DNA of 40,442 nt from Macrostomum lignano. Lineage: Eukaryota. The first letter of the stretch is position 1; each line of letters starts with the position of its first letter. Positions 12,727-40,442 of this stretch are shown here, piece after piece. The stretch covers positions 1 through 40,442 of the forward strand of contig NIVC01000523.1 in the NCBI GenBank assembly GCA_002269645.1. The letters run 5' to 3'. A program made the translations under genes and the position numbers. The notes beneath the pieces are model-generated. The model ran no database searches and was not told the origin of the DNA. It saw nothing but the letters and a program-made list of their open reading frames with translations.

Positions 12727-13640
12727 AACCTGAATAGCCCTGAAATATCCCACCTGAATAGCCCTGAAATATCCCACCTGAATAGCCCTGAAATATCCAA
12801 TCTGAATAGCCCTGAAGTATCCCATCTGAATAGCCCTGAAGTATCCCACCTAAATAGCCCTGAAGTATCCCATCTGAATAGCCCTGAAGTATCCCACCTG
12901 AATAGCCCTGACTTATCCCACCTGAATAGCCCTGACTTATCCCACCTGAATAGCCCTGACTTATCCCACCTGAATAGCCTGAAGTATCCCATCTGAATAG
13001 CCCTGAAGTATCCCATCTGAATAGCCCTAAAGTATCCCATCTGCATAGCCCTGAAGTATCCCACCTGAATAGCCCTGACTTATCCCACCTAAATAGCCCT
13101 GAAGTATCCCATCTGAATAGCCCTGAAGTATCCCACCTGAATAGCCCTGACTTATCCCACCTGAATAGCCCTGAAGTATCCCATCTGAATAGCCCTGACT
13201 TATCCCACCTGAATAGCCCTGACTTATCCCACCTGAATAGCCCTGACTTATCCCACCTGAATAGCCCCGACTTATCCCACCTGAATAGCCCTGACTTATC
13301 CCACCTGAATAGCCCTGACTTATCCCACCTGAATAGCCCTGAAATATCCCTAGCCCTGAAGTATCCCATCTGAATAGCCCTGAAATATCCCTAGCCCTGA
13401 AGTATCCCACCTGAATAGCCCTGAAATATCCCTAGCCCTGAAGTATCCCACCTGAATAGCCCTGAAGTATCCCATCTGAATAGCCCTGACTTATCCCACC
13501 TGAATAGCCCTGACTTATCCCACCTGAATAGCCCTGAAATATCCCTAGCCCTGAAGTATCCCATCTGAATAGCCCTGAATTATCCTATCTGAATTGCCCT
13601 GAAGTGTCCCACCAAAATAGCCCTGAAGTATCCCACCTGT
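12727..13640. repeat. Minisatellite, 24-bp units, downstream of the NTPDase stop
   Basis: CCTGAATAGCCCTGA(AG/AA/CT)TATCCCA repeated. Confidence 0.95.
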
Positions 13641-15580: not shown

Positions 15581-18500
15581 GAAACGAAATCAAAGCATCA
15601 TCAGCATTATCGCGACAGAGATCGCGTGGACAGAGACAGAGACAGGGATAAAACTAGAGACAGAGATCGTGACAGTCAAAGTGGCAGGCGTCGCGAAGAT
15701 CGAAAGCATCATCGCCATGGCGATGAGGTAGAGAAGCACAGAAAATCGAGACACAGACGGAAGTCCTCCAGCAGCAGCAGCAGCAGTTCGTCCTCGTCAG
15801 ATGATTCTCCAGCCAGACAGAAATCTGAAAAGCAGTCCAGCGGCGCCTCTATTGAAGAGCGTCGTCGGGTGAAAGCGCTGCTCAAAGCTGCCGAGACGCC
15901 CGAGCAGAAGCGGGCCCGTCGGTTAGCTAAGAAGGCGGCTAAGTCGGAACGATGGCGTCGGGAACTGGGCTGGGAGGGCGACTACACGGATATAGATAAT
16001 CCGTTTGGCGACGAGAAGCTCACGCAGACTTTCGTTTGGCATAAGAAACTGCAACGCGAGGGCGGCACTATGGCCGACGTGGAGAGAAAAGCGGCTGAGA
16101 ATCGGGCTGAGCTCGAAAAGGTTTTGTTTTGGGTTCATTGTTTAAGTCATTGTTTGGTTATCTGAGTCATAATTCTACTTCAAAATTCTAGTCATTGACG
16201 TCATAGATCAGTGATTGAAGTCATTGATCAGTCATTGAAGTCATTGATCAGTCCTTGAAGTCATAGATCAGTCATTGATCAGTCCTTGAAGTCATAGATC
16301 AGTCATTGATCAGTCCTTGAAGTCATAGATCGGTCATTGATCAGTCATTGAAGTCATAGATCGGTCATTGATCAGTCATTGAAGTCATAGATCGGTCATT
16401 GATCAGTCCTTTAAGTCATAGATCGGTCATTGATCAGTCATTGAAGTCATAGATCGGTCATTGATCAGTCATTGAAGTCATAGATCGGTCATTGATCAGT
16501 CATTGAAGTCATAGATCGGTCATTGATCAGTCCTTTAAGTCATAGATCGGTCATTGATCAGTCATTGAAGTCATAGATCGGTCATTGATCAGTCATTGAA
16601 GTCATAGATCGGTCATTGATCAGTCCTTTAAGTCATAGATCGGTCATTGATCAGTCATTGAAGTCATAGATCGGTCATTGATCAGTCATTGAAGTCATAG
16701 ATCGGTCATTGATCAGTCCTTTAAGTCATAGATCGGTCATTGATCAGTCATTGAAGTCATAGATCGGTCATTGATCAGTCATTGAAGTCATAGATCGGTC
16801 ATTGATCAGTCCTTTAAGTCATAGATCGGTCATTGATCAGTCATTGAAGTCATAGATCGGTCATTGATCAGTCATTGAAGTCATAGATCGGTCATTGATC
16901 AGTCATTGAAGTCATAGATCAGTCATTGATCAGTCATTGATCAGTCATTGAAGTCATAGATCGGTCATTGATCAGTCATTGAAGTCATAGATCGGTCATT
17001 GATCAGTCATTGAAGTCATAGATCGGTCATTGATCAGTCATTGAAGTCATAGATCAGTCATTGATCAGTCATTGATCAGTCATTGAAGTCATAGATCGGT
17101 CATTGATCAGTCATTGAAGTCATAGATCGGTCATTGATCAGTCATTGAAGTCATAGATCGGTCATTGATCAGTCATTGAAGTCATAGATCAGTCATAGAT
17201 CAGTCATTGAAGTCATAGATCGGTCACTGGTGTGTCATCACATGCTCATTAGGATCATTGCTATAGCTTTATCCTATTCCCCAAACAAACCGCAGGTCCG
17301 CGAGCGTTGCCGTCAGAACGAGCTGGAACGCGAGGCCCGGCTGAAGGAGCAGGAGCAGGAGCAGCGCGATCGCGAGTCTGAGAACTTTCGCCAGTGGTGG
17401 CAGCAGGAGGACGCGTTCCACTTGAAGCAGGCGCGGGCCAGATCGGCCATCCGCATAGCCGAAGGCCGCGCCAAGCCCATCGACCTGCTGGGCAGGTATG
17501 CCGAGGCTTTGCAAAGAATCTCTGGTATTAAAATTAAACGCGATGACGGGGCGGACGACAATGATGACGAATTTGATGAAGACGAGAGTCTGGCTTTCTT
17601 AGACGCCCATTCGCCGGACGCCCTGCTCACCGGCTTGAGCGTTGACGATCTCGAGGATTTAAAAGTCGATATCGGCGTCTATCAGAAATTGGAACGGCAG
17701 AGCGGCTTAACCGAAGGCGCCTGTCGGGACAGCGAGACTTTCTGGAGCTGCGTAGCTCTGCTAGTTCAGCACGCTCTGGATAGCAAGAGTGCACCGGCCG
17801 CCAGCTCCGCCACGGCTGCCGTTGCTGACAGAATCGACGCCGTCATCAGGGGCAAGTCGGCCAGCCAGTTGGCCGCTCTGGAAGACTCGGTGTCCGCCAG
17901 AATCTGCGCGGCCGGACCGGGCACCGATCTGGCCTACTGGGAGGAGATGGTGGACAAAGTTAAAGTGGCCAAGGCGAAGGCTACGCTGCAGGAGTTGCAT
18001 AAAGTGCTGCTGCGTAGGCGAATGCAGAGACTGCAGGTTAGTAGGTTTGATAGAATCTTCATCTTCATTTAATACCTTAACTAGCGCTAATCCCCAATCG
18101 GAACTACCCCGCTAATCCATACCCGGAAACCCGATGAAAACTCTAGCGCTCCAACGATTCTAGCGCTTATTTTTATGGTAGATCGTTTTCAACTGGAAAT
18201 ACCCCCTGATCCTCATCAGGAAATACCCCACTGATCCTCATCTGGAAATACCCCACTGATCCTCATCTGGAAATACCCCACTGATCCTCATCAGGAAATA
18301 CCCCGCTGATCCTCATCAGGAAATACTCCACTGATCCCTGTCCGGAAATACCCCCCTGATCCTCATCAGGAAATACCCCACTGATCCTCATCAGGAAATA
18401 CCCCGCTGATCCTCATCAGGAAATACTCCACTGATCCCTGTCCGGAAATACCCCCCTGATCCTCATCAGGAAATACCCCACTGATCCTCATCAGGAAATA

Positions 18501-21500
18501 CCCGCTGATCCCCATCAGGAAATACCCCACTGATCCTCATCAGGAAATACCCCGCTGTTCCCTGTCCGGAAATACCCCGCTGATCCTCATCAGGAAATAC
18601 CCCACTGATCCTCATCTGGAAATACCCCACTGATCCTCATCAGGAAATACCCCGCTGATCCTCATCAGGAAATACTCCACTGATCCCTCTCCGGAAATAC
18701 CCCCCTGATCCTCATCAGGAAATACCCCACTGATCCTCATCAGGAAATACCCCACTGATCCTCATCAGGAAATACCCCACTGATCCTCATCAGGAAATAC
18801 CCCCCTGATCCTCATCAGGAAATACCCCACTGATCCTCATCAGGAAATACCCCACTGATCCTCATCAGGAAATACCCCGCTGATCCTCATCAGGAAATAC
18901 CCCGCTGATCCTCATCAGGAAATACCCCACTGATCCTCATCAGGAAACACCCCACTGATCCTCATCAGGAAATACCCCGCTGTTCCCTGTCCGGAAATAC
19001 CCCGCTAATCCTCATCAGGAAATACCCCACTGATCCTCATCAGGAAATACCCCGCTGATCCTCATCAGGAAATACCCCACTGATCCTCATCAGGAAATAC
19101 CCCACTGATCCTCATCAGGAAATACCCCGCTGATCCTCATCAGGAAATACCCCGCTGATCCTCATCAGGAAATACCCCGCTGATCCTCATCAGGAAATAC
19201 CCCGCTGTTCCCTGTCCGGAAATACCCCGCTGATCCTCATCAGGAAATACCCCACTGATCCTCATCAGGAAATACCCCACTGATCCCTGTCCGGAAATAC
19301 CCCGCTGATCCTCATCAGGAAATACCCCGCTGATCCTCATCAGTAAATACCCACTGATCCTCATCAGGAAATACCCCGCTGTTCCCTGTCCGGAAATACC
19401 CCGCTGATCCTCATCAGGAAATACTCCGCTGATCCTCATCAGGAAATACCCCACTGATCCTCATCAGGAAATACCCCGCTGTTCCCTGTCCGGAAATACC
19501 CCGCTAATCCTCATCAGGAAATACCCCACTGATCCTCATCAGGAAATACCCCACTGATCCCTGTCCGGAAATACCCCGCTGATCCTCATCAGGAAATACC
19601 CCGCTGATCCTCATCAGTAAATACCCACTGATCCTCATCAGGAAATACCCCGCTGTTCCCTGTCCGGAAATACCCCGCTGATCCTCATCAGGAAATACTC
19701 CGCTGATCCTCATCAGGAAATACCCCACTGATCCTCATCAGGAAATACCCCACTGATCCTCATCAGGAAATACCCCGCTGATCCTCATCAGGAAATACCC
19801 AGATAATCCCATCCAAAAATTCCCCCCTAATGTCCAACCGGAAATGCCCCGCTAATCCCTATCTAAAATACCCCTCACTTTGATTATAAAATCTAAAAAT
19901 ACCCCTAACCCCAGTCCAGGAGCACCCCTCTATACCAATTCCCGCCGTCAAAACACTCTAGGAGCGTCAGTCGGCCGACCAGGGAGCGGAAGTCGACGAC
20001 CCGGAAGTGGCAGCGGCGTCGGCCACGGCAGCGACGGCAACCAGCAGCGCCGCCTCCGAAGAAGGCGGCGGCGACACCGCCGAGTCAGCCGATGACGACG
20101 AGGCCGAGCAGCAGAGGCAGCAACAGCAAAAGCAGCAGCAGCAGCAGCAGCAGGCTCTTGATGCGTACGATTCTGGTCGATATTCGCCGGCAAAACTCGA
20201 TCCGGACACGGTCGCCGGTCAGATAGTGATCAACTGGAGCGAAGAGTCGGTCAGGCTGGAGCATCTCCGGCGTCAGGCTGGCGACGCGGCAGCGCCCGAG
20301 CCGGAAGAGAAAACCGAAGAGATTGCGGTGAAAACTCCCGGCCTGGCGGCCTGGTCAGACCGGCTGAAGCCAAAGAAGCCGCGGTATTTTAATCGGGTTA
20401 ATACCGGCTACAACTGGGGCGCTTATAATCGGACGCATTTCGATTCGGACAATCCGCCGCCGAAGATTGTGCAGGTGAGAGCGGAAACTAATGTAAATTT
20501 TTGTTTATTTTCGTTTTGATTAAAATCTACTGGTTGGCAAATTTACCTCAAGGAGAATCCAGCTCAGAATCCAGAGTCCAGCTCAGAATGCAGAGTCCAG
20601 CTCAGAATGCAGAATCCAGCTCAGAATGGGAAATCCAGCTCAGAATGCAGAATCCAGCTCAGAATGTGAAATCCAGCTCAGAATGCAGAATCCAGCTCAG
20701 AATCCAGCTCATAATGCAGAATCCAGCTCAGAATGCAGAATCCAGCTCAGAATGCAGAATCCAGCTCAGAATCCAGAATCCAGCTCAGAATGCAGAATCC
20801 AGCTCAGAATGCAGAATCCAGCTCAGAATGCAGATCCAGAATCCAGCTCAGAATCCAGAATCCAGCTCAGAATCCAGAATCCAGCTCAGAATGCAGATGC
20901 AGAATCCAGCTCAGAATCCAGAGTCCAGCTCAGAATCCAGAATCCAGCTCAGAATGCAGATCCAGAATCCAGCTCAGAATCCAGAGTCCAGCTCAGAATG
21001 CAGAGTCCAGCTCAGAATGCAGAATCCAGCTCAGAATGCAGAATCCAGCTCAGAATCCAGAATCCAGCTCAGAATGCAGAATTCAGCTCAGAATGCAGAG
21101 TCCAGCTCAGAATGCAGAATCCAGCTCAGAATCCAGAATCCAGCTCAGAATGCAGAATCCAGCTCAGAATCCAGAATCCAGCTCAGAATGCAGAATCCAG
21201 CTCAGAATGCAGAATCCAGCTCAGAATGCAGAGTCCAGCTCAGAATGCAGAATTCAGCTCAGAATGCAGAGTCCAGCTCAGAATGCAGAGTCCAGCTCAG
21301 AATCCAGCTCAGAATGCAGATGCAGAATCCAGCTCAGAATGCAGATGCAGAATCCAGCTCAGAATGCAGAATCCAGCTCAGAATCCAGAATCCAGCTCAG
21401 AATGCAGAATCCAGCTCAGAATGCAGAATCCAGTTCAGAATGCAGAATCCAGCTCAGAATGCAGAATTCAGCTCAGAATGCAGAATCCAGCTCAGAATGC

Positions 21501-22534
21501 AGAATCCAGCTCAGAATGCAGAATCCAGCTCAGAATGCAGAATCCAGCTCAGAATGCAGAATCCAGCTCAGAATGCAGAGTCCAGCTCAGAATGCAGAAT
21601 CCAGCTCAGAATGCAGAGTCCATCTCAGAATGCAGAATCCAGCTCAGAATGCAGAATCCAGCTCAGAATGCAGAGTCCAGCTCAGAATGCAGAATCCAGC
21701 TCAGAATGCAGAATCCAGCTCAGAATGCAGAATCCAGCTCAGAATGCAGAATCCAGGAAAGGAAAGGGAATAGAAGAGATAAGAAACAAGACAGGGTGAA
21801 AAGGGGGGAGACGATCTCAGAGAGAGGGGAGAGAGGGGAGTGGGGATAGGAGAAAGAGAAGAGACCAAAGCCTTGAGCGGGCTTTTGTAAAGTTTCAATG
21901 GACCCGAAGGCCGGATAGAGGCCTCTGCATTGCTTCAGTTCACCCAGCTGTAAAATGGGTGCCAGCACTAGCTGGGGTTATTGAGGGTGTGCGTGGCGAC
22001 CCCCCAGTCCTTGGACTGAACAGCCGTACGCAGCCTTCAGATGCGCCGCGCAATAGCTGCGGCTGAGCTGTCGGTTGCACATCTGGCCCAATTGGGGCAG
22101 GTGTAATCAAATGTTAATATTGTTATTATTTATACAGGTAGATAGTTATATTAAGCACAGGGTAGACAGACTGCTGGTGGACAGGTTAGTGAGATATTTT
22201 AGGACAGCTAGAGGGGCTGATAATGGACAGGTACCTAGACTCGAGTTCATAAGCCAAACCTCGCCTGTTAATCGCTCAGGGCTACAAGTTCAACATATTC
22301 TACCCGGATCTGCTGGACAAATCGAAGGCGCCCAGCTACAGCACCGAGCCATGCAAAGACGATCCGCAATTTGCCATCCTGCGCTTCACTGCTGGGCCGC
22401 CTTATGAAGACGTGGCTTTCAAAATTGTACGCAACGAATGGGACACATCGTTTAGGCACGGGTTCCGCTGCCAGTTTGTTAATAACACGTTCCAGTTGCA
22501 CTTTCATTTTCGTAGGAATCGCTACAGAAAGTAG
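15581..22534 (+). CDS. CACTIN: Splicing factor Cactin, 4 coding exons (~682 aa plus initiator Met)
   Basis: Exons 15581-16120 (RD/RS-rich, DNPFGDEKLTQTFVWHKK), 17296-18036 (Cactin_mid: EDAFHLKQARARSAIRIAEGRAKPIDLL), 19962-20474 (KPRYFNRVNTGYNW...HFDSDNPPPKIVQ) and 22280-22534 (CactinC: GYKFNIFYPDLLDK...AGPPYEDVAFKIV...FRCQF...HFRRNRYRK*). All three introns are GT-AG, phase 0. Confidence 0.96.
16190..17225. repeat. Minisatellite in Cactin intron 1, 31-bp units
   Basis: Unit = GTCATTGATCA + GTCATTGAA + GTCATAGATCG (11+9+11 bp sub-repeats). Confidence 0.95.
18195..19800. repeat. Minisatellite in Cactin intron 2, 25-bp units
   Basis: GGAAATACCCC(A/G)CTGATCCTCATCA with a recurring variant ...GTTCCCTGTCC. 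Confidence 0.95.
20555..21755. repeat. Minisatellite in Cactin intron 3, 19-bp units with +/-6 bp variants
   Basis: CAGAATCCAGCTCAGAATG repeated; built from CAGAAT/CCAGCT hexamers. Confidence 0.95.
21900..22030 (+). mobile_element. SINE-like fragment in Cactin intron 3
   Basis: TTCAGTTCACCCAGCTGTAAAATGGGTGCC (21934-21963) resembles the conserved central domain of CORE-type metazoan SINEs (CTCAGTxxxCCxxCTGTAAAATGGG). No clear tRNA head or TSD seen. Confidence 0.45.
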
Positions 22535-22699
22535 AACTGTTGCTTATCTCCGCGCTATTTGCATTGACGTTTGCGTTTATTATCTGATTCTACTACTGTT
22601 GTATCCGCGAATTTTAGTAGCAGGTAGCGAGTGTAAAATAATTTGCTGGGACATTTTTTTGCGATTGAGGACATTCTAGGGTTATAGATGATGTAAGCT

Positions 22700-23574: not shown

Positions 23575-24500
23575 TTCTGAAAATCGCCCTCTGATCCCCA
23601 TTGAGAATCGCCCTCTGATCCCCATTGAGAATCGCCCTCTGATCTCCATTGAGAATCGCCCTCTGATCTCCATTGAGAATCGCCCTCTGATCTCCATTGA
23701 GAATCGCCCTCTGATCTCCATTGAGAATCGCCCTCTGATCCCCATTGAGAATCGCCCTCTGATCTCCATTGAGAATCGCCCTCTGATCTCCATTGAGAAT
23801 CGCCCTCTGATCTCCACTGAGAATCGCCCTCTGATCCCCATTGAGAACCGCCCTCTGATCTCCATTGAGAATCGCCCTCTGATCTCCATTGAGAATCGCC
23901 CTCTGATCTCCACTGAGAATCGCCCTCTGATCCCCATTGAGAACCGCCCTCTGATCTCCATTGAGAATCGCCCTCTGATCTCCATTGAGAATCGCCCTCT
24001 GATCTCCATTGAGAATCGCCCTCTGATCTCCATTGAGAATCGCCCTCTGATCTCCATTGAGAATCGCCCTCTGATCTCCATTGAGAATCGCCCTCTTATC
24101 CCCATTGAGAACCGCCCTCTGATCTCCATTGAGAATCGCCCTCTGATCTCCATTGAGAATCGCCCTCTTATCCCCATTGAGAATCGCCCTCTGATCTCCA
24201 TTGAGAATCGCCCTCTGATCTCCATTGAGAATCGCCCTCTGATCTCCATTGAGAATCGCCCTCTGATCTCCATTGAGAATCGCCCTCTGATCTCCACTGA
24301 GAATCGCCCTCTGATCCCCATTGAGAACCGCCCTCTGATCTCCATTGAGAATCGCCCTCTGATCTCCATTGAGAATCGCCCTCTGATCTCCATTGAGAAT
24401 CGCCCTCTGATCTCCATTGAGAATCGCCCTCTGATCTCCATTGAGAATCGCCCTCTGATCTCCATTGAGAATCGCCCTCTTATCCCCATTGAGAACCGCC
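23575..24500. repeat. Minisatellite, 24-bp units, highly homogeneous
   Basis: GAGAATCGCCCTCTGATCTCCATT repeated about 38 times. Confidence 0.97.
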
Positions 24501-24689
24501 CTATATTCCAGATTTCAATCATCTGCGCTTTGACAAGCGGCATTGCACGGTAGATTAGTATCATGGATGCGGCAGTCGGTTCCCATATGAAAGGCAAAAA
24601 ATAGATAAAATATCTAAATCATTATCATAGCATTTCATTCCTTTTTTAAGCTAAACAAACTGGTGTTATCTGAGACTCTTATTTAGGCA

Positions 24690-25820: not shown

Positions 25821-26374
25821 TTATCGATGATGAAAAATAAGTTTACTACATAATTGACATTCACTGCACTGCGCTTGAAATGGGTAAACATTGCATTTAT
25901 TACCGTACGAGTTGCAACGAACAATTCACCGTTAAAATTTCGCTCATCTGTAAGAAAAAAAATAGTTGAATGCATATGACATGCTTCATCGGACAGAAAA
26001 AGGAGCTGGAAAAAACGAATACAGAAATACAGCAAAGATAAAACAATAAGCTTCTATAGAGCAACTCTGAAAAAATATATCTATTTTTCTAGAGAAACGG
26101 GCGGAGAAACAATCTACTTTGTCGTGATCGTATGCTTGATTGGCTCGCGATATTTGTTTAAATCAGTTGTTGAAATTTCGTTTTTTTTAGATTTTTCCTA
26201 GTACAATACTCAAAATTAGTCACTGCAGCTCGACGTTCGAACGGTTCCTTTGGAGCCGGCTTTTGCTTATTAGAGTACGCGCGTTGAGGATATAACAGAC
26301 AGTAGATTTGATATAATCACAGCTAAATGTGCTTTCAAATTGTGAGATGACTTGGCTCAAGAGAGAAAGCAATT

Positions 26375-27352
26375 TCTGAGATGTCCAGGCTCATGGGAAA
26401 TTGCTGGGATGTCAAGGCTCATGGGGAATTGCTGGGATGTCAAGGCTCATGGGGAATTGCTGGGATGTCAAGGCTCATGGGGAATTGCTGGGATGTCAAG
26501 ACTCATTGGGGAATTGCTGAGGTGCCGAGGCTCATGGGGGAATTGCTGAGGTGCCGAGGCTCATGGGGGAATTGCTGAGGTGCCGAGGCTCATGGGGGAA
26601 TTGCTGAGGTGCCGAGGCTCATGGGGGAATTGCTGAGGTGCCGAGGCTCATGGGGGAATTGCTGAGGTGCCGAGGCTCATGGGGGAATTGCTGGGATGTT
26701 AAGGCTCAGGAAGGAATTGCTGGGATGTCAAGGCTCAGGGGGGGGGAATTGCTGAGGTACCAAGGCTCATGGGGGAATTGCTGGGATGTCGAGGCTCATG
26801 GGGGAATTGCTGAGGTGCCGAGGCTCATGGGGGAATTGCTGAGGTGCCGAGGCTCATGGGGGAATTGCTTGGATGTCAAGGCTCAGGGGGGAATTGCTGG
26901 GATGTCAAGGCTCAGGGGGGAATTGCTGGGATGTCAGGGCTCATGGGGGAATTGCTGAAGTGCTGAGGCTCACGGGGGAATTGCTGGGATGTCGAGGCTC
27001 ATGGGGGAATTGCTGGGATGTCCAGGCTCATGGGGAATTGCTGGGATGTCAAGACTCATGGGGAATTGCTGGGATGTCAAGACTCATTGGGGAATTGCTG
27101 AGGTGCCGAGGCTCATGGGGGAATTGCTGAGGTGCCGAGGCTCATGGGGGAATTGCTGAGGTGCCGAGGCTCATGGGGGAATTGCTGAGGTGCCGAGGCT
27201 CATGGGGGAATTGCTGGGATGTCAAGGCTCAGGGGGGAATTGCTGGGATGTCGAGGCTCATGGGGGAATTGCTGAGGTGCCGAGGCTCATGGGGGAATTG
27301 CTGAGGTGCCGAGGCTCATGGGGGAATTGCTAAGGTGCCGAGGCTCATGGGG
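26375..27352. repeat. Minisatellite, 28/29-bp units
   Basis: GGCTCATGGGGGAATTGCTG(AGGTGCCGA/GGATGTCAA) with two alternating tail variants. Confidence 0.95.
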
Positions 27353-28220: not shown

Positions 28221-29875
28221 TCACACGGAGGTCTCGTACACCAGGCAGACAGCCTCGACCAGCATGGGAGTCGGGCTAGGGCTGGGACTGGCACTGCGGG
28301 TCCCCTGAAGGCAGCCACGGCCTCCTGGTGGCAGCAGGCGCACATGCTGCTGCTGATTGCCGTCTCTGCTGAAAACCGGTATAAGACCAGCCGACTTCTT
28401 GTCTCTCCGCGGCTGCTCCTCGCAGTCCTGACTGAGCGGCTCGCTGAACCGGACCAGCCGAGGCCGCTGACGCCATTGGCGACGCCGATGCCAGCAGCAG
28501 AAGTTGGCCAGGCCTTCGCGGCAACGACAGACCAGCCGGCGACCGAAATCCGTGGTGCAGGCCAGCAGTAGGAAGTTGAACAGCGAGTCCAACTCAACCA
28601 GTGTGTTCACTACCAGTTCCGTGAGCGGCGCTTTGTCCTCAACAAAGCCGCAGAGATCGGTGGGACTCTCCAGGATTAAACAGCTGACTGACAGGGCCAC
28701 GATAATGCGAATCGCTTGCCGTTCTCGCCGGCTCTGTCGGCGGCAGTGCCGCATGTCGGCGGGTGGCCGGGTTCGCCTGGCCGGAGCCAAGCGGCTTCGA
28801 GCCGCGGAGGCCTGGCGCAGCACCCGCACCGTGATGCAGGTGGCCACGAATATTGACACGATCGGGAGCAGGCCCTGCAGCACCGGTTGGGTGGGTGATA
28901 AGGTTTAGTATATTAGACTAGCGGTTTTCGGCCCCCCTCTGGGGGTATAATTGATCTCAGCAGATATTGTTGATCCTGCTTTCCCATACTATGCATCCCA
29001 TCCTATTACTATGGATCATATAACATACTATAGATCCCATCTTGTACTTTGGATCCTATAACATACTATATGGATCCCATCCCATCCTATTACTATGGAT
29101 CCCATAGTAGGGTTAAAAGGTTAAAAGGTTAGAAGGGGATGACAGATGGCTGCAGTTTACATCAGCGTGTGTCTCAGCATTAGCACTATAATTTCGAGCT
29201 AAACCCTTCCCCTAAAAATGCGCATTAGGCATCACCTGACCTCACCTGGAAAGCGTAGAATGCAAATTCGATCGCCCGTGCCTGACTCAAACTTAAATAC
29301 TGACTTTTCAGCTGCCCATCCTGCGCCATCACCATGGCAACGCTAAGCGTCATAGCTACACAGCCGATACCGGTTTCCATGACAACCAGGTAAGCCAGAC
29401 GAAACGCTGTGCCTCGCTGCGACGTCAACGGACGAAAGACCGCTTCTACGCGCGACCAGGACACGAGGCACATCGTCCAATTGCGCATGCACAGTGCGGC
29501 GCGAAGCGCGCACAGCAGCACCAAAATTGGCGCCGAAGTCTCCGCAGATTGGTCAGCCGAGGCGGGCAACATGGCGGCAGGCAGGTAGGAGGCGATCACG
29601 CAGCTGTGAAACAGCAGCTCGAACAGGGACATGGCGACCAACAGGCGGCGCAGCACTGGGTGCACGCTGCGACCTCGGCGCAGAAAATGGGCAAACGCCA
29701 GTACAGACAGGCAGCAATTCACGCTGGACAATGGCAGGTAGAAGTACGGCTCCAGTGGGTGAGCGAACCGTTTCACTGGGCTGCTGATATTGCTGAAGTT
29801 GCTGACGCCGCCGCCGATTCTGTTGTAGTTTGACGTCAAAGCAGCTGCAAGCTCGTCGTAAGTTGCCAAGTCCAT
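28221..29875 (-). CDS. Divergent rhodopsin-class (class A) GPCR, two coding exons
   Basis: Exon 1 29875 (or 29974) to 29246, donor CAG|GTGAG; exon 2 28874 to 28221 (TGA), acceptor CTGCAG|GGC; phase 0, joining FAFYAFQ|GLLPIVSIF. Seven hydrophobic segments, N-terminal NFS/NIS sequons, TM3 end SWSRVEAVFRPL (cf. SxDRYxAVxxPL), TM6 ILESP, TM7 LDSLFNFLLL. About 427 aa from Met 29875. Confidence 0.85.
28985..29108. repeat. Short degenerate repeat in the GPCR intron
   Basis: ACTATGGATCCCAT-like motifs recur about 5 times. Confidence 0.6.
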
Positions 29876-30464
29876 ATTGTGCTCTAGGCCAGCTAAAAGA
29901 TTTCGTGCAAGTAAAGACTTCTTCTGTTTTGTGCCTACATAGGTAAATATATAGAGAGAGCTACCGTTCTTCATCCGTGCATGCGTATGTGCTGAAGCGG
30001 CTTAAAACCCAGGGAGCGAGAGCAGCCAATCCGGTTGCAAAATTGGATTCGGAGAAGGCGGTTGCTGAGGCTGAATCGCGGAGGATGAGGTGGAGAGGCT
30101 GGGTAGGGGGATGAGCTACTCTCCGGAGAGGCTAAGAGGATATTTCAAAGGGGATTATTGAGTGACTTAGGAGCAGCTAAGTTCTACTGAATCCCCATGC
30201 GTCTGCAGCATAAATGAGTTTTTGTTAATCCACCTGTAAGAGAAAACAAATTAAATTTTTATTTGTTTCTTTGTTTGTTCAGTGATTAATTTTGCATTCT
30301 GTTTTGTTGCTGGTGATTTTAATGAAGAATTGAAAGAAAGAAAAAATTTTAACCAAAATCAGTGATTACAAACCACTTTTACAAATGGAGATGATAATAA
30401 ATAATGCCGTTTTAAAATATTCATTTGTGTTCATGCCTTTTATCATACAGGAGCTGTCTTTGTG

Positions 30465-31170
30465 AGTAGGTTATCCTACAAGTGCTGTCATTTGTGAGTA
30501 GGTTAACCTACAATTGCAGTAATTTGTGAGTAGGTCATCCTACAAGTGCAGTCATTTGTGAGTAGGTCATCCTACAAGTGCAGTCATTTGTGAGTAGGTC
30601 ATCCTACAAGTGCTGTCATTTGTGAGTAGGTTAACCTACAAGTGCAGTCATTTGTGAGTAGGTCATCCTACAAGTGATGTCATTTGTGAGTAGGTTAACC
30701 TACAAGTGCAGTCATTTGTGAGTAGGTCATCCTACAAGTGATGTCATTTGTGAGTAGGTCATCCTACAAGTGATGTCATTTGTGAGTAGGTCATTTTACA
30801 AGTGATGTCATTTGTGAGTAGGTTATCCTACAAGTGATGTCATTTGTGAGTAGGTCATCCTACAAGTGATGTCATTTGTGAGTAGGTCATTTTACAAGTG
30901 TTGTCATTTGTGAGTAGGTTATCCTACAAGTGATGTCATTTGTGAGTAGGTTATCCTACAATTGTGCTGTCATTTGTGAGTAGGTTATCCTACATGTTTT
31001 GTCATTTGTGAGTAGGTCATCCTACAAGTGCTGTTATTTGTGAGTAGGTTATCCACCAAGTGCTGTCATTTGTGAGTAGGTCATCCTACAAGTGCTGTTA
31101 TTTGTGAGTAGGTTATCCACCAAGTGCTGTCATTTGTGAGTAGGTTATCCTACAAGTGCTGTCATTTTGT
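30465..31170. repeat. Minisatellite, 32-bp units with an internal hairpin
   Basis: GTCATTTGTGAGTAGGT(C/T)ATCCTACAAGTG(CA/AT/CT); GTAGG-N4-CCTAC palindrome in each unit. Confidence 0.95.
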
Positions 31171-31486
31171 GAGTAGATCAAGCCAACATCTTGCATCCTT
31201 GTAAAGTTGTTCACTGAAGCGTTTACTGTCGGGGAGGCACAGCTTCAAACGGAATTATGTTCGCGTTTTAAGAGCAACTCAACATCGACTCAAAATAAAT
31301 CGAAGGCTTTATAAAATTACTTCGGTAGAAGCTTCAGCTTCCTTAGTCATTTTCCTGCAATTAAGAAAATTTCTACAACTAATGCCAGAAGAAAATCTGG
31401 GCTAAAAGATGCATTTGTAAATAAGAGGTTATTAGGCTTAAAAAAACCTTTGATGCACCTTTCAGAATTTTCGCTAAGTTTTTTGC

Positions 31487-31940: not shown

Positions 31941-32394
31941 GGTAGTCACGCTACACTTTCACCACAGCAATCATCCCAGCAACAAGGAATCCTTAGTTTC
32001 GCATGGCTGATTGCGGAACAAGAGCCATTCGCAAAGAGCAGATATCGGATTGCTCTTTGAGATAAAATCAAAGTCACGTGATGTTGACGGCTTCAAATGA
32101 CGTCTAACAAAACGACGTCTGCCTTTTTGTTAAGATCAGGCGAAGCAGCCAGCTGGGACTCCCTGCAGAGAGCGGGGTGCCAAGAGGCTGAGTTTATCAT
32201 GCCTGCGATGCAAGGCAGTTCTTTCAAAATCCTATTCAGTGATTGTGAAAGGCGAATTCGGGAATAATTTGTTTCAGAAATTATATCAATAGTTTTGTGA
32301 GACCGCCAAACAGATTGTAAATTACGTTGTTGGAGCATATCTATCGATTTTTGCATGCTCTCGTCTCCGACTCCCTATCGTCTTCTCTGAAACC

Positions 32395-33090
32395 CCGCTG
32401 TCGCGTCTGACACCCTGCCGTCTCATCTGACACCCTGATGTCTCATCTGACACTCCGCTGTCTCATCTGACACCCTGCTGTTTCATCTGACACCCTGCTG
32501 TCTCATCTGACACTCCGCTGTCTCATCTGACACCCTGCTGTTTCATCTGACACCCTGCTGTCTCATCTGACACCCTGCTGTCTCTTCCGACACTTCGCTG
32601 TCTCATCTGACACTTCGCTGTCTCATCTGACACCCTGCGGTTTCATCTGACACCCTGTGGTCTCATCTGACACCCTGATGTCTCATATGACACCCTGCTG
32701 TCTCATCTGACACCCTGTGGTCTCATCTGACACCCTGATGTCTCATCTGACACCCTGTGGTCTCATTTGACACCCTGTGGTCTCATCTGACACCCTGTGG
32801 TCTCATCTGACGCCCTGCTGTCTCATCTGACACCCTGTGGTCTCATCTGACACCCTGCTGTCTCATCTGACACCCTGCTGTCTCTTCCGACACTTCGCTG
32901 TCTCATCTGACACTTCGCTGTCTCATCTGACACCCTGCGGTCTCATCTGACACCCTGTGGTCTCATCTGACACCCTGATGTCTCATATGACACCCTGCTG
33001 TCTCATCTGACACCCTGCTGTCTCATCTGACACTCCGCTGTCTCATCTGACACTCCGCTGTCTCATCTGACACCCTGCTGGCTCATCTGA
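32395..33090. repeat. Minisatellite, 20-bp units with a 300-bp higher-order repeat
   Basis: CATCTGACACCCTGCTGTCT repeated. 32581-32700 and 32881-33000 carry the same ordered variant units (1 difference seen). Confidence 0.95.
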
Positions 33091-34699
33091 TATTCTTTAT
33101 TTAATATATTTAAGACAAATTTACAATTTTCTCCGACAAAACCTGGATTCTGCTGTCTCCCTGTGAACCGCTAGATGGTTTTGATCCTACAAAAACTACA
33201 AAGTCAAAGTCTAACATATCATTGCCATAAGCATTTTGTAATATGGAACTATAATTGAATTAACAACCTGAGCATCAGCGACGTACTGCAGTTCAGCCGC
33301 ATTAAATGAGGGGCTAGTTTGTGTGAGATCACGAACTGGACTTTAAAGTCGAATTTATCGATACTCATCAAATAATCCTTGATAAAGAGGTACGATTAAT
33401 TAGAGGGTCTAAAATCACCGCCTGCTCAATGAGGGCGCTTTCGAAGTTCTCCGTAATGAATTCTTTCTTGTAAGTCGATAAGCGCTGCAGATTAATGCAA
33501 ATCCGATATCCTAGCTGCAACCTACTAGCTGTGTCAGAAATTCAGTCACGAGGAGAAAAAAATTGTTTTTAAAACGGATCAAGGGTCGAGTCGCCCTCGA
33601 GTGGAAATTATTTTTTCAGCACAGCTGTTATAGCCAGCTGAGGGCTGCTCAGCTAAAGATTTGTTTACCACAGATTCAACAGCTTCACAAGAAATGATTT
33701 CCGGAGTAGGGCTTCTGCTGAGACTGGAACTATTAAAGATTGTAGGGGTGTAATTGTTGCACCTGGCGTAACCCCAACTGTGCAGGAAATGGCCGATTAA
33801 AGGCCTCTCTATGCGAGCCATACAAGCACAGTCCAGTCAGTGCAGGTGAGCGATTTAGACTATAATTCCTCTAAGCCCCAGGATTCCAAGGGTGGATAAT
33901 AGATAACGCCATTTTAGTCTCTCCTGGTAGATGGATTCGATGCGGCAGGGGATTGGGATGTGCAGGTGGACTTAAACTGTATTTAGAGGTATTGTTACTG
34001 CTATGATTATTTTATTGAATTCAGTTCATACTCGGTTACCTTCCACTCTGATCCCCAGCTTCTATTCCATGCCCTGCGACAGGCGCACTCACATATACTC
34101 ACACTTCATGGAAAATAAATAAACAGATATGGAAGCAACAAAGAGTGGAATAGCTATGCCCTGAATTGCTGCCTCTAAACTTGGCCCTAACAGTTGGGTT
34201 AATTTTTAAAACGGAATAGGTTAAGGTTGAAATATTAGGAAATGGGGGAGCAATGGGGGAGACCGCAACAAAGGAAAAATATCTTAACAGACGCGGCCGA
34301 CGGGCGGGGCTGTTTGGCGCGATGGACGTCGGATGGTCACGGCAGTCACGGACGATCCGGAAGTCTTGGATTGGGGTGGGTGTTAGGGAATTAAAGTCTC
34401 AAATTATGGGGAAGGAAAGGACAGTTAGCGTGGGTTCTTCTGAGGATCCTGAGGATCTAGGAGGTACGTGTACAGTTGGGTCCGCGGAAAGGCTCCAAAT
34501 TCCTCTTTGACATGCTACTTTTTCCTTAGTAGCACACTATGAACGAAATTTAAAGCCATACTTGCTAGTTATCATATAGCCTTAAGTGCTTGATTAATTT
34601 TTGACTAATTTTTAATGTCAGGCCATCAAGTCACCAAAAATCAAGACGGTAGAGAAGAGGCGGTAGAGAAGAAGAGGAAACAGAGAGAATGAGAGAGAA

Positions 34700-36095
34700 G
34701 GAGAGATGCGGCAGAGAGAAGGAAAAGAAGTAGAGAGAAGGGTAGAGAAGGAGAGAGGAGAGAGAAGGAGAGAGGAGAGAGAAGGAGAGAGGAGAGAGAA
34801 GGAGAGAGGAGAGAGAAGGAGAGGAGAGAGATGGAGAGAGGAGAGAGAAGGAGAGAGGAGAGAGAAGGAGAGAGGAGAGAGAAGGAGAGAGAAGGAGAGA
34901 GGAGAGAGAAGGAGAGAGGAGAGAGAAAGAGAGAGGAGAGAGAAAGAGAGAGGAGAGAGAAGGAGAAAGGAGAGAGAAGGAGAGAGGAGAGAGAAGGAGA
35001 GAGGAGAGAGAAGGAGAGAGGAGAGAGAAGGAGAGAGGAGAGAGAAGGAGAGAGGAGAGAGAAGGAGAGAGGAGAGAGAAGGAGAGAGGAGAGAGAAGGA
35101 GAGAGGAGAGAGAAGGAGAGAGGAGAGAGAAGGAGAGAGGAGAGAGAAGGAGAGAGGAGAGAGGAGAGAGGAGAGAGAAGGAGAGAGAGAAGGAGAGAAG
35201 GAGAGAGGAGAGAGAAGGAGAGAGGAGAGAGAAGGAGAGAGGAGAGAGAAGGAGAGAGGAGAGAGAAGGAGAGAGGAGAGAGAAGGAGAGAGGAGAGAGA
35301 AGGAGAGAGGAGAGAGAAGGAGAGAGGAGAGAGAAGGAGAGAGGAGAGAGAAGGAGAGAGGAGAGAGAAGGAGAGAGGAGAGAGAAGGAGAGAGGAGAGA
35401 GAAGGAGAGAGGAGAGAGAAGGAGAGAGGAGAGAGAAGGAGAGAGGAGAGAGAAGGAGAGAGGAGAGAGAAGGAGAGAGGAGAGAGAAGGAGAGAGGAGA
35501 GAGAAGGAGAGAGGAGAGAGAAGGAGAGAGGAGAGAGAAGGAGAGAGGAGAGAGAAGGAGAGAGGAGAGAGAAGGAGAGAGGAGAGAGGAGAGAGGAGAG
35601 AGAAGGAGAGAGAGAAGGAGAGAAGGAGAGAGGAGAGAGAAGGAGAGAGGAGAGAGAAGGAGAGAGGAGAGAGAAGGAGAGAGAGAAGGAGAGAAGGAGA
35701 GAGGAGAGAGAAGGAGAGAGGAGAGAGAAGGAGAGAGGAGAGAGAAGGAGAGAGGAGAGAGAAGGAGAGAGGAGAGAGAAGGAGAGAGGAGAGAGAAGGA
35801 GAGAGGAGAGAGAAGGAGAGAGGAGAGAGAAGGAGAGAGGAGAGAGAAGGAGAGAGGAGAGAGAAGGAGAGAGGAGAGAGAAGGAGAGAGGAGAGAGAAG
35901 GAGAGAGGAGAGAGAAGGAGAGAGGAGAGAGAAGGAGAGAGGAGAGAGAAGGAGAGAGGAGAGAGAAGGAGAGAGAGAAGGAGAGAAGGAGAGAGGAGAG
36001 AGGAGAGAGAGAAGGAGAGAAGAGAGAAAAGAGGAGAGAGAAGGAGAGAGGAGAGAGAAGGAGAGAGGGAGAGAGAGATGTGGCAGAGAGAGGAG
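34700..36095. repeat. Pure-purine GA minisatellite, 17-bp units, inside the left arm
   Basis: GAGAGAGAAGGAGAGAG repeated about 80 times; the equivalent CT-rich tract in the right arm (37530-37640) is only ~110 bp. Confidence 0.97.
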
Positions 36096-36714
36096 AGAGG
36101 CTGTTTGGTGAGTCCGTTGCCCTTTTGCAATTATAAAACGCATACAAAGTGATCTTTTTTCAAAGGTTTCGAACTACAAGTGTTGAGTATCTCTTCCCGC
36201 CTTCTGAAGCTGCCATCAGCAGGAATGAGATCATACTATGATCACGCAAGTTCGGTGCGATAAAAATTCAAGTCATTTATCAACGTATCCTGACAGGGGG
36301 TTGTATCGCTTATAAAAATTATTAGGGCATCATCGAATTATTTGCTGGCCTCCTTCGCGCTCACGGAATTTCTATAGTTGGTGAGGCGACCCTCTTTGCA
36401 TGTACATCAGGAATGAAAACTATTTTATGTGCATGGAACAGGGCAAGAAGAACTAAAAATCCCTTCCAAATAATGGCGAACAATAGAAAGCAGAGAGGAG
36501 AACTCGAATGGGGGTATAGTTGGCAGGGCCTCACTACATGACTAAACAACGAGATAAAAAGGCTGGGAAGAGAAGAGGCCGTCTTTCAGTCACCCTCCGA
36601 CCACCTCACACAGATCGATCGATATTCGAGATGGGGTGAGGGGCACGGGGAGTTACTCTGCGAATTTCCTTTTCCCTTGGTTCCCTGCTTTTGCCCGTGA
36701 CAGCGAACTCGAGC

Positions 36715-37031
36715 TTCATAAACCTCGTAGAACACACAGGCGATATAGAAGTCTCACATCACACGTCTCACACTCCCAAAATGGGACAGATTTGACCAAC
36801 TCAGACGGATTCGTTCTAAAGACAGCTGAGTAAAAAACACGAAAATCTAAGTGTAATTTACCGTCATCTTACCGCGCTCACAACTGTATATTCGATTTTT
36901 CTCGAATTGCTCGTATCTCTAGATTTATAAGATAAATTTTGCTGATCAAATATTCCATGACTCACATTTAGTTCTCCATAGACTCCCAGAAAAGAATTCG
37001 CAATCGGTGACAACAATGTCTCAGTAAATGA
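36715..37031 (-). other. Three spliceable exons of an unidentified gene inside the foldback element
   Basis: Long pyrimidine tract + CAG, exon 37031-36966 (SFTETLLSPIANSFLGVYGELN), GTGAGT; 47-nt intron; exon 36918-36873 (RYEQFEKNRIYSCER), GTAAGA; 47-nt intron; exon from 36825 (AVFRTNPSELVKSVPFWECETCDV...). The frame stays open across both junctions. Confidence 0.6.
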
Positions 37032-37771
37032 CTGGCAGAGAGAAGCCAAAAGAAAAGAAAGGTTTGCGGGCCTATATAATTGCGTCATCCCGTGGGCGGT
37101 CGGTTTGGGACCCCAAGAGTATTTGGATTTGGGATTGAAACCTTTCGTGTTAATGCTTGTTAATGCTTTGCATCCATACCTTTGCTCAGTTAAACAAAAC
37201 AGACTACGGGACTCAATTGTCCCCTGGATATGCTATGTGCATGTGGAATCATTTTTATACATTGTGCACGGATAAAACCTTGGAGGAAACCATTTCTCAC
37301 TGGTGTTCCGTGCCTCCCTACCTCCCAATAGGGTGAATCCCTTCCCAGAGTTTCAAGAATACCCCTCTCCCTCTCTCTCACTCTTTCTCTCTTTCTCTCC
37401 CTTCTTCTCATTATTGCTTAGCGGCGGCTTCAAAAAGAGATACTCAAAACTTTTAGTTTGAAACCTTTGCAAAAATATCACTCACTTTGTATGCATTTTA
37501 TAATTGCGGGAGGGCAACGGACCCCAAACAGCCTCTCTCCTCTTTCATTCTCACTTCTCCCTGCCGCCTCTCTTCTTCTCTCTGTCTCCTCTCTCCTTTT
37601 CTATGCCGCCCCTTCTCCTTCCATCTCTATGTTTCTCTCCTTGTTTTTAATAAAAAAGCGCTTCAATATTTCAGCATTTGATTTTCGGTGACGTAATGGC
37701 CTGACTTAAAAAATTTAGTCAAAGATTATTCAAGCACTTAAGGCTATATGATAACTAGCAAGTATGGCTTT

Positions 37772-38720
37772 TGTAGTGATCCGCTAGTTTAGTGTTAGGC
37801 GTCGCACTTTGTCAGCAGTTGCCCTTGCCCTCGCCCTCGCCCTGGGTTGCTGTCTGCCGCTGGTCAGCTTCCCGCCTCCCTCCTTTTGGCTGTCTGTTGC
37901 TCCTCCCTTCCCTACCTCTGCCCGTTTGCCCTTCGTTTCTCACCGCTCAGCTTCTCTGCTGTGGGCTGTCTTTGTTTCGTCAGTCTCTGTTTCTCCTGTC
38001 ATGTGAGCCAGTCACATGACATGATGACAGGCCTCTCGTTCTTGGAGTCCTAAAGTGCAGTAAACAAGTTATTGCACTCGCTGGTCCTGTTTACTGGGAG
38101 AGTCACGTGCTTAAGGCCCCTCCCTTCTCTAAGGAGAGGAGTGATTCATGTTGCTAAAAATAGCTACTGAATCACAGCCGCGTGTACTCTGCCCGAAGAC
38201 CCCAAGTGACGTCAGTTCTAAAAATAGAACGAGTCACGAGATCTTGTGCAATATTGGGCCAGAGGTGAATCCCGCGCTATAAATAGGACCCCTCTCCCCC
38301 TTGTTCCGTCAAGGAGTTCCTAGTTTTCAGCGTTTCTGAGTGTCTGTGCTGAGCGACCGTTCTCTAAGTGTTTGCGTATATTGAGCTCTCTCTCCTATTG
38401 GTCTGACTGCGACCCTACTAAAGCCAACCCTAGCCTAAGAGAGACTAACACAGCCCTCCCTGTACCAACCAAGCCCGGCAGGTACTGCTGACGAGACGCC
38501 TGAGCTGCAAATCTGCACGTCGTGCTGAGTTCGTTGACTTGTTTATTTCGTTCCGACAGGAAGCTCACCTCATCGAAGGCCGAGACCTGAAGGAACTGGT
38601 GGCAGCACTACCTACATGTACGCTACGAAGAGCTACGAAGACTTCCCACGGAAGAAGAGGCCCGAGACTTAAGGTAAACTTAAGGGCGTTAAAGCGGGAA
38701 GCATAGAGCATTCTACTTCA
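37772..38720 (+). mobile_element. Solo LTR (949 bp) nested in the right arm
   Basis: Starts TGTAGT and ends ACTTCA; flanked by a 4-bp target duplication CTTT (37768-37771 and 38721-38724). The uninterrupted site TATGGCTTTAAA is present in the left arm. TATAAATA at 38278-38285. No coding sequence. Confidence 0.85.
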
Positions 38721-40442
38721 CTTTAAATCTCGTTCATAATGTGCTACTAAGGAAAAAGTAGCATGTCAAGGAGGAATTTGGTCCATCCAATCCCCATCGG
38801 CCCAGCCATGCAATAGGAGCGCATTTCACACTGCAGTTTTCCACGGAATTCCGCGGCCGTTTCGCGGGAATTTGGACCCTTTCCGCGGACCCAACTGTAT
38901 AGCTATAATTAGAGTATATATTTATGGGAGATTGACTTGGTCCTACTAGGGGGAGATCGCGCGGCGATCCCGTGAGAAAACAAAACGATGCAAGGGGAAG
39001 AAAACCAGTAAATTATAATTAAGACACCAAGCAGCATACGATGCCACTCAGGGCTCAAAACGGGCTCCTATTTATAGCCTTGGCATGACATTGAATGCCA
39101 TAATTGACGTCCTGTATGTCCTTGACATCCGTTAACCAAAGCAACCCTGATGATCTGACGTAACCCGCCAGCCGCGCGCGCTGTGATTTGACAAGAAATT
39201 TGGATCGGGTGCAGCAGAGAAAATGAATGATGATGGGGGATTACCTAACACAGGCGGCGAAAAGCTTCGGAAGATAGATCGTCATGCGCGCGTCAAGCAC
39301 TGCAGACCACCACAGATACTCCAAATGACATTTGGAGGGATCGTAAAAGCAGCAGGGTATCTCACAAGCGGGTCAAATTTCAGACTTACATGTACTGGTA
39401 CTATAATCACAAATGACAATATCATTCTAACGCATTCTCAAAACGTTTAAAGATGCAGGGTTCCGGTTGTTGGTGGTTCAATATAGCTTCGCCATTACCT
39501 TTACACATGTGTACATGTAAATCCAACAGATTGATTCCTTTAATTGCATGTAGCGGACAATGTTAAATACCTATACAGTGGACGACGTCCATATAATATA
39601 ACACGGCGCCATGCAATACATGTACACACTACTAAAGGGGCGGGGGCGCCATACTGATCGAGCGAATTGAGGGCGGTACGTGTGTGAGGACGTTTTAAAG
39701 CAAAAGGAAACAGGGCGCCATCATCGCCAGCCTCAAGAAAAGGGGCGGCCCCCGCCAACCCCCCCCCCTATATTCACCTCTGCCTGCAAGGTATGCCTGC
39801 TGCAGCTCAATCTACTCAAGCTACTCGATCGTAACATTATTGTTACTCTCCTCCTTCCTAGAGGGGTTATCGCAAAGAGGGGTATGCAGTCACTACTCCT
39901 TCCTAGTCTCATACCTTCCTTGCTATTATGATACCTTCTTTGTTACTCTTGTACCTTTCCCCTTTTTTCATAGCCTCCTCATCTCGACTGGTATCAGAAC
40001 GCGACATATTTAAACTAGAAACTTAATTTCTCATAGACTCAAAACGAAAATTTTAACACGTTTAAAATAATTTATAAAATTTTTTTCTAGAAATTTTTTT
40101 TGCATTTAGGATCTACAAATTGTGTAAAAAGGTATTGGAAGAAATTGTTTTAATATTTTATTTAAATAATTGTTTTCTAATAAATTTTTCAAATTTAAAA
40201 CTTAGTTAGATAATTAAAAGATTTTTATATATACAATGACCGGTTTTTTAGTTCCAGTTCCCGTTCCCGATAAGAAAAAAATACCAAAAAGATCGATTTA
40301 GCAAAAACAATTAAATGTAGAACGATTTTTGAAATCGTTCTAAAGTCTGTATATATATAAAAAATCAGCTTCACAGACCTTACTGTTGCTTCAGTGCACG
40401 TCTGAGGTCTCCAATATTGCATAGCGACTAGCGTGATGTTGA

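Follow-up and report, generated by a model that had tools for sequence, protein, structure and literature searches.

The locus examined here, positions 34473-38897 of a 40,442-bp stretch of DNA from the flatworm Macrostomum lignano (GenBank assembly GCA_002269645.1, contig NIVC01000523.1, forward strand; the entire stretch is hereafter referred to as the window), raises a twofold question: do the two inverted arms that delimit it belong to one mobile element and, if so, does this element carry a piece of a host gene? The original prediction, a note made from the letters of the sequence, had answered both parts in the affirmative, proposing a foldback Tc1/mariner-like transposon that had captured an intron-containing gene fragment. 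Our analysis upholds the first part of this proposal but not the second. Probably, the locus is a single copy of a non-autonomous cut-and-paste DNA transposon with long terminal inverted repeats (TIRs), that is, of the foldback type, which belongs to the Tc1/mariner superfamily type and has Tc1/pogo-style ends. It is a well delimited, non-coding relic of ordinary architecture that spans 4,425 bp today. All nucleotide comparisons of the element were confined to the window, in which there is one copy of it.

The ends of the element are the strongest part of the case. An exact 20-mer, CAGTTGGGTCCGCGGAAAGG, occupies positions 34473-34492 on the plus strand and, inverted, positions 38878-38897 on the minus strand; at up to 3 mismatches, these are its only two matches in the window, compared to 0 expected from 100 shuffles. 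Accordingly, within the window and at this threshold, there are no inner termini, as had been noticed originally. When the flanking TA is included, 32 of the 33 terminal bases are inverted-identical. The TA dinucleotide lies directly outside both termini, and no alternative phasing of the flanks yields a duplication of 3-9 bp. Superfamilies with longer target duplications are ruled out because the flanks share only TA; the 9-bp target-site duplication that defines the Drosophila FB family is likewise absent. The 5' end starts with CAGT, which is typical of Tc1- and pogo-like elements. Thus, the CAGT termini and the TA flanks, both of which are directly observed, together with the long inverted arms described below, support the assignment to Tc1/mariner-like, TA-flanked DNA transposons.

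The inverted homology extends far inward from these ends. A minus-strand BLASTN comparison of the region with itself yielded four collinear inverted blocks, namely, 34471-34503 matching 38899-38867 (97% identity), 34495-34555 matching 38781-38721 (95%), 34552-34644 matching 37771-37678 (91%), and 36037-36195 matching 37602-37435 (83%, with 87% in the portion 36090-36195 matching 37542-37435); by eye, faint inverted homology can be followed for about 30 bp further inward, to about 36229/37404. No further large inverted repeats were found in the remaining 34 kb of the window. Given that there is no comparable inverted repeat elsewhere, the combination of the termini and the four blocks is real and far beyond chance. 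The identity between the arms declines from the tips inward (97 > 95 > 91 > 83-87%), a gradient consistent with a single element whose ends are under selection, given that only the ends are expected to be functionally constrained. With the secondary events discussed below removed, each arm would measure about 0.5-0.6 kb, compared to a core of 1.17 kb, and there are no inner termini, which is the arrangement of a foldback element. The original estimate of 300-400 bp per arm plus a GA/CT tract holds insofar as the inward inverted homology is real, but the arms are not collinear and the tract is very asymmetric. From left to right, the features of the locus are as follows.

34471-34472 (no strand): left TA, putative target-site duplication, by direct reading at GTGTA/CAGTTGGG.
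34473-34503 (plus strand): terminal inverted repeat on the left, identical to the right end in its first 20 nt; the 33-nt arm including TA is 97% identical.
34495-34650 (plus strand): unique sequence of the left outer arm; CCAAATTCC occurs once, at 34495, compared to twice in the right arm, at a spacing of 94 bp.
34691-36100 (plus strand): 17-bp minisatellite, GAGAGAGAAGGAGAGAG x 83, in the left arm; 1,410 bp, score 2365, 92% matches.
36101-36229 (plus strand): left inner arm; homologous to the right arm through the 87% portion of the innermost block, and more weakly to about 36229 by direct reading.
36230-37403 (no strand): core, unique, about 1.17 kb; protein, Pfam, Rfam, open reading frame (ORF) and splice screens detected neither coding nor RNA-family content.
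37404-37545 (minus strand): right inner arm, by self-alignment.
37546-37677 (minus strand): degenerate CT tract of about 130 bp, the right counterpart of the GA array; 37549-37621 is a 21-bp unit x 3.4.
37678-37771 (minus strand): right middle arm, ending in CTTT (37768-37771), one copy of the duplication on either side of the nested insert.
37772-38720 (plus strand): nested insertion, candidate solo long terminal repeat (LTR), 949 bp, TGTAG...CTTCA, flanked by CTTT/CTTT, GC content 52%.
38721-38781 (minus strand): right outer arm, starting with the second CTTT (38721-38724); 95% identical to 34495-34555.
38782-38866 (minus strand): right-arm segment of 85 bp without a left counterpart, between the GGAATTTGG copies at 38773 and 38867; holds a second CCGCGGAA motif and is probably original arm sequence.
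38867-38897 (minus strand): right terminal inverted repeat, by the inverted 20-mer and self-alignment.
38898-38899 (no strand): right TA, by direct reading at CCCAACTG/TATAGC.

As is apparent from this list, the arms differ by several large segments, and the question arises whether they could have had separate origins. The right arm contains 949 bp (37772-38720) and 94 bp (38782-38875) that are missing on the left. The shorter surplus consists of the 85 bp at 38782-38866 and one copy of a 9-mer that occurs twice in the right arm, on both sides of these 85 bp, and once in the left arm, at 34495. Because the surplus is bounded by a 9-bp direct repeat that is present in a single copy on the left, the difference was probably produced by a deletion between the 9-bp direct repeats in the left arm. 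The lost sub-terminal 94 bp included second copies of the CCGCGGAA and GG(T/A)CCAAATTCC motifs; if, speculatively, these were inner transposase-binding sites, their loss might matter.

Such indels would also be compatible with two independent, oppositely oriented insertions of members of the same family that both lost their inner ends, with the core representing host DNA trapped between them. We consider this scenario unlikely. The core bears no hallmark of a transposable element, and the TA flanks are uninformative in this respect given that every Tc1/mariner end abuts TA. However, inner termini are absent within 3 mismatches, and the shared sequence ends at one and the same position in both arms, with the homology fading (36196-36229 and 37404-37434) rather than stopping at two breakpoints. 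Two independently truncated insertions are hard to reconcile with this pattern because their breaks would have to coincide. Furthermore, each of the large indels can be explained separately, by a flanking duplication, the 9-bp repeat, and the expansion of a minisatellite.

The last of these differences concerns the GA/CT tract. In the left arm, the plus strand of the minisatellite consists of purines only, so that both the GC skew and the AT skew equal 1.0 over positions 35001-36000, whereas, in the right arm, the tract is short and degenerate, and the region around it includes about 52 bp without a counterpart in the left arm. Tandem sub-repeats in the arms, 17 bp x 83 on the left and degenerate CT repeats on the right, are a feature of foldback-type elements. 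A polypurine array of this kind combined with long arms is prone to replication slippage and the formation of secondary structure, which is consistent with the large asymmetry between the arms. The element provides a clean local example of the way in which a short GA tract in a transposon arm can grow into a 1.4-kb minisatellite. We additionally note that the 1.4-kb polypurine/polypyrimidine tract at 34691-36100 is a strong candidate for triplex (H-DNA) formation as well as for replication slippage, and that it produces open frames of about 426-509 amino acids on both strands, which are certainly not genes.

Tandem arrays are not limited to the element. Between positions 4918 and 33090, the window contains, at an extraordinary density, more than 20 unrelated minisatellite arrays, with units of 17-62 bp in 10-65 copies each, for example, at 7558-8374, 8870-9900, 12728-13639, 16190-17226, 18195-19800, 20554-21756, 23578-24502, 26371-27352, 30440-31176, and 32386-33090. 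Several of these minisatellites lie between exons of a cactin gene and are presumably intronic, and they contain long spurious ORFs in several frames.

The 949-bp block in the right arm is most readily interpreted as a nested insertion. The junctions themselves are observed directly: CTTT is present on both sides of the block, at 37768-37771 and 38721-38724, whereas the uninterrupted left arm contains a single AAAG/CTTT, and when 37772-38720 and one CTTT are removed from the right arm, it aligns without gaps to the left arm across the junction. The block starts with TGTAGT and ends with ACTTCA, that is, has TG...CA ends, with 5 of the 6 terminal bases inverted-complementary, and its GC content is 52%, compared to 33-36% in the arm segments on either side. 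Given these ends, the 4-bp repeat flanking them and the discontinuity in GC content, we infer that the block is probably a solo LTR whose insertion duplicated 4 bp of the target.

The block also contains a promoter-like cluster at 38104-38285, which consists of an E-box, CACGTG (38104), CTAAAAATAG (38154 and 38218), a cAMP response element (CRE), TGACGTCA (38207), and CTATAAATAG (38277). A TATAAA is located at 38278, and the E-box, the CRE and two further CTA(W4)TAG motifs lie within the 175 bp upstream of it; the CTA(W4)TAG motifs, at 38154, 38218 and 38277, resemble MEF2 sites. The block is devoid of heat-shock elements such as those that some M. lignano LTRs are reported to carry.

The only LTR-retrotransposon fragment of the window and the block are dissimilar at the nucleotide level. 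Two observations speak against the LTR identity of the block: it lacks an AATAAA or ATTAAA polyadenylation signal, and a 4-bp flanking repeat is also expected from a microhomology-mediated deletion in the left arm. Hence the alternative, possible although doubtful, that the block is original arm sequence that was lost on the left by a deletion between CTTT microhomologies, in which case the original arms would have measured about 1.5 kb and included the promoter-like module. The junction left by a deletion between 4-bp repeats is no different from that of an insertion that duplicates 4 bp, the adjacent 94-bp difference is best read as just such a left-arm deletion, and the missing canonical polyadenylation signal would be accounted for. 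Conversely, the TG...CA dinucleotides fall exactly at the junction, an outcome for which we roughly estimate a chance of 2%, allowing for 5 junction placements; the GC content jumps sharply, from 33-36% to 52%; and the M. lignano genome is very rich in LTR retroelements (PMC5730564, PMC12801592). Repeats fill more than half of this genome, with LTR retrotransposons contributing about 21% and simple and tandem repeats about 15% (PMC5730564), and at least 137 LTR families, mostly Ty3/Mdg4, have been described (PMC12801592). Given this abundance of LTR elements and tandem repeats, which is also manifest in the window in the form of more than 20 arrays and a pol fragment, both the expansion of a minisatellite and the insertion of an LTR element are commonplace in this genome.

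We now turn to the second part of the question, the content of the core. The core shows no similarity to any other part of the window, and we could not detect any coding signal in it. Within the element region, no ORF with a start codon exceeds 74 amino acids, and the longest stop-to-stop frames, 122 amino acids in the core (P=0.14) and 85 amino acids in the insert (P=0.74), are at the chance level compared to Markov simulations. A chimeric query of 1,797 amino acids that combined the substantial stop-to-stop ORFs, of at least 25 amino acids, from the arms, the core and the insert had 0 matches among 5.8 billion proteins, and neither did the full six-frame translation of the core have any in the same set (0 matches); this set did return M. 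lignano UniRef proteins for an exon of the host cactin gene. Pfam searches produced no match for the ORFs (E<=1) or for the six frames of 36150-37480 (E<=10), and Rfam searches produced none at gathering thresholds or at E<=1.

When the 122-amino-acid core frame was searched separately, 8 weak HMMER matches were obtained among 1.84 billion representatives. We dismissed these as repeat-inflated chance matches because all 8 come from a single 15-residue stretch, YGCKALTSINTKGFN, that matches each unit of bacterial leucine-rich repeats (LRRs) of the DUF285/BspA type.

The splice signals, too, fail to support exons in the core. The original prediction had placed exons with strong splice sites there, but a strict splice-motif screen of 36230-37403 found 0 donor-like and 1 acceptor-like motifs, no more than the background level of the window. 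All of the good splice-like sites, which are probably those noticed originally, fall in the 949-bp block: a donor, CAG/GTACTG, at 38481/82, an acceptor, TTCCGACAG/G, at 38559/60, and a further donor, AAG/GTAAAC, at 38673/74. The 38-amino-acid "exon" delimited by the splice-like sites of the block has no homologue, as judged by a search with the ORF query against the 5.8 billion proteins. A TATA-like CCTATATAATTGCGTCATCC adjoining a TGCGTCA half-site can be seen by eye in the core, at 37060-37095.

These results bear directly on the possibility that the locus is a Pack-type element, that is, a TIR transposon in which either the core or the nested block is a captured, unspliced fragment of a host gene. 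The uniqueness of the core within the window and its lack of relationship to the arms would suit this explanation, as would the splice-like sites at 38481/82, 38559/60 and 38673/74 and the presence of a TATA-containing promoter-like cluster. Nevertheless, we regard it as highly improbable. The ORFs of at least 25 amino acids and the six-frame core translation match nothing in a database that does hold M. lignano proteins; there is no Pfam match even at E<=10, and the ORFs are of chance length; the core has no strong donor motif; the matches of the 122-amino-acid frame trace to one 15-amino-acid stretch and bacterial DUF285/LRR repeats; and the splice-like sites belong to a block with its own TG...CA ends and 4-bp flanking duplication. 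Without protein matches, Pfam domains, ORFs beyond chance length or an excess of splice motifs in the core, the intron-containing gene fragment of the original prediction, and Pack-type gene capture with it, is unsupported; for captured non-coding or unannotated sequence, this verdict is one from searches at the protein level.

Alternatively, the 1.17-kb core could be the eroded transposase gene of a formerly autonomous element, a long-TIR transposon resembling Tc3, which is a member of the Tc1 family with TIRs of 462 bp. Long-TIR elements of the Tc1 family such as Tc3 have the same layout as the restored element, which would total about 2.3-2.4 kb, its core taking up about 1.1 kb and each arm about 0.5-0.6 kb. 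We nonetheless deem this origin quite unlikely: the six frames of 36150-37480 have no Pfam match at E<=10, with neither helix-turn-helix nor DDE domains, and the core has no protein match. No transposase was identified anywhere in the element when the ORFs and the six frames were compared to Pfam, which bears out what had been noticed from the sequence, and the lack of a match even at such a permissive threshold argues against a recognizable eroded transposase.

Thus, we favor the interpretation of the locus as a single, non-coding foldback element of the Tc1/mariner type. Some considerations nevertheless count against it. The evidence comes from a single copy, so that any repetitiveness or mobility of the element is putative. 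The TA evidence is weak, consisting of 2 bp in one copy, and these 2 bp would flank any Tc1/mariner end. The TA flanks alone are no proof that both arms moved as a unit: because every end of a Tc1/mariner element adjoins TA, they are uninformative on this point. Moreover, a 12-mer search for a repetition of the terminal binding motif further inward, as in the inverted repeat/direct repeat (IR/DR) layout, found nothing beyond chance. Outside the window, the 20-nt terminus had 0 exact matches in metagenome and viral contig collections, a conserved 25-nt segment of the arm had 0 exact matches in metagenome contigs, and the terminus as a text string was not found in the literature, with the 10-mer version matching only unrelated primers.

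Assuming a single element, its history could be reconstructed as follows. Each of the original arms would have consisted of the terminus, unique sequence, a short GA/CT tract and more unique sequence, about 0.5-0.6 kb altogether, and the original element, with three secondary events removed, would have been about 2.3-2.4 kb long, built around the non-coding core of about 1.17 kb. The secondary events would be the expansion of the GA tract of the left arm into the 83-copy, 17-bp minisatellite of 1.4 kb; the insertion of the 949-bp solo LTR into the right arm, with duplication of CTTT; and the loss of 94 bp from the left arm between the two 9-bp direct repeats. Together, these three events account for the present length of 4,425 bp and the asymmetry of the arms. 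Their order can only be proposed, and some of them possibly took place in a progenitor copy. The arms themselves may have formed when gap repair switched templates, as has been suggested for hairpin-like Tc1/mariner MITEs, or miniature inverted-repeat transposable elements (PMC3814204). In derivatives of Tc1/mariner elements, both deletions between microhomologies of 6-8 bp and the origin of long, hairpin-like TIRs via template switching have been documented (PMC3814204). Given that the element encodes nothing, it could move only in trans; we infer that a related transposase would bind the terminal 20-30 bp, excise the element and reinsert it at a TA. Because both 20-nt tips are intact, this copy may, judging from the sequence, still be mobilizable in principle.

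A more far-reaching scenario would be that the element is the first described member of a Macrostomum-specific foldback family, in which an expandable polypurine minisatellite in the arms seeded some of the tandem arrays in the genome and the 949-bp block is a captured host module, consisting of a promoter and a 5'-exon, that is shuttled in a Pack-like manner. We consider this combination very unlikely.

The remainder of the window provides the genomic setting of the element. Host genes are located at 15626-22679 (plus strand) and 10222-11780 (plus strand) and, according to Pfam, include cactin exons and an exon of a GDA1/CD39 nucleoside phosphatase. The database relatives of the cactin exon ORF at 17230-18072 are exclusively M. 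lignano proteins, cactin paralogues with 91-98% identity; the Pfam domain CactinC_cactus was identified at 20007-20519. The best cactin match reaches only 91%, so that, relative to the UniProt reference, the window may represent a homeologue, another line or a sister species. At 225-3914 (minus strand), an LTR-retrotransposon fragment cut off by the edge of the window encodes a gag-like ORF of 479 amino acids, with domains for reverse transcriptase, RNase H and integrase zinc binding after it; its coding sequence is distributed among ORFs that overlap or are frameshifted. Finally, two long hydrophobic ORFs at 28221-29974 (minus strand), of 220 and 249 amino acids, have the appearance of multi-pass membrane proteins and no Pfam match; possibly, a gene for a lineage-specific membrane protein has exons here, at a distance of about 4.5 kb from the element.

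To our knowledge, the DNA transposons of M. lignano have so far not been catalogued in detail, and the genome is under-annotated. The family represented by this element has probably not been described before. The only Tc1/mariner element of M. lignano that we found described in the literature is DD37E/Mosquito, which has 24-bp TIRs starting with CTGGG (PMC10379824); the TIRs of the present element are different, which rules out identity with DD37E/Mosquito. Should multiple copies with intact ends turn up, the genome of a flatworm model would gain a curated family of DNA transposons. In practice, an endogenous TA-inserting element with exactly defined ends could be of interest for M. lignano transgenesis. 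The significance of the finding is modest, and it has no bearing on a long-standing open question.

In terms of known systems, close parallels come from Caenorhabditis elegans. Tc7 and Tc6 are non-autonomous, palindrome-like elements with Tc1-type ends and without a transposase, which are presumed or have been shown to be mobilized in trans by a transposase of the Tc1 family that requires only the outer few tens of bp. The present element resembles them in the TA target, CAGT-type termini, long inverted arms, a short unrelated center and the absence of a transposase, but has no sequence relationship to them, is larger, and differs in the GA/CT tract in the arms and the nested insertion, and its mobilization in trans is putative. 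Among these elements, Tc7 is cited in PMC3814204.

Tc3 and other long-TIR Tc1/mariner elements share with the present element the long terminal and sub-terminal inverted repeats, the TA duplication and the restored size of about 2.3 kb, but those elements encode a DD(E/D) transposase, none of which is detectable here. In the Tc1/mariner superfamily, TIRs of up to about 1.9 kb as well as sub-terminal inverted repeats have been reported (PMC10379824). The Goblin, Gnome and Elf MITEs of Aedes aegypti derive from the Tc1/mariner element Ozma, and their TIRs were lengthened by template switching (PMC3814204). These MITEs are similarly non-autonomous and show microhomology deletions (6-8 bp), suggesting a plausible origin for the arms and the 94-bp deletion observed here; they are, however, shorter than 1 kb and have an identified parent, whereas the present element, at 2.3-4.4 kb, has no known parent. 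Pack-MULE and Pack-TIR elements also have TIRs that enclose an interior unrelated to a transposase, but for the interior of the present element, homology to host genes was sought at the protein level and not found.

The repeats within the arms bring to mind yet another group. The FB elements of Drosophila and Galileo, which produce target duplications of 9 bp and 7 bp, respectively, and belong to other superfamilies, likewise combine long arms, with tandem sub-repeats that differ in number between the arms and from copy to copy, and a variable or non-coding middle. Given the TA flanks and CAGT ends of the present element, the resemblance is architectural only and does not imply membership. Thus, as judged by this comparison, the nearest analogues of the M. 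lignano element are hitch-hikers similar to Tc7 and Tc6 along with long-TIR elements of the Tc1 family, with arm repeats reminiscent of those in FB or Galileo.

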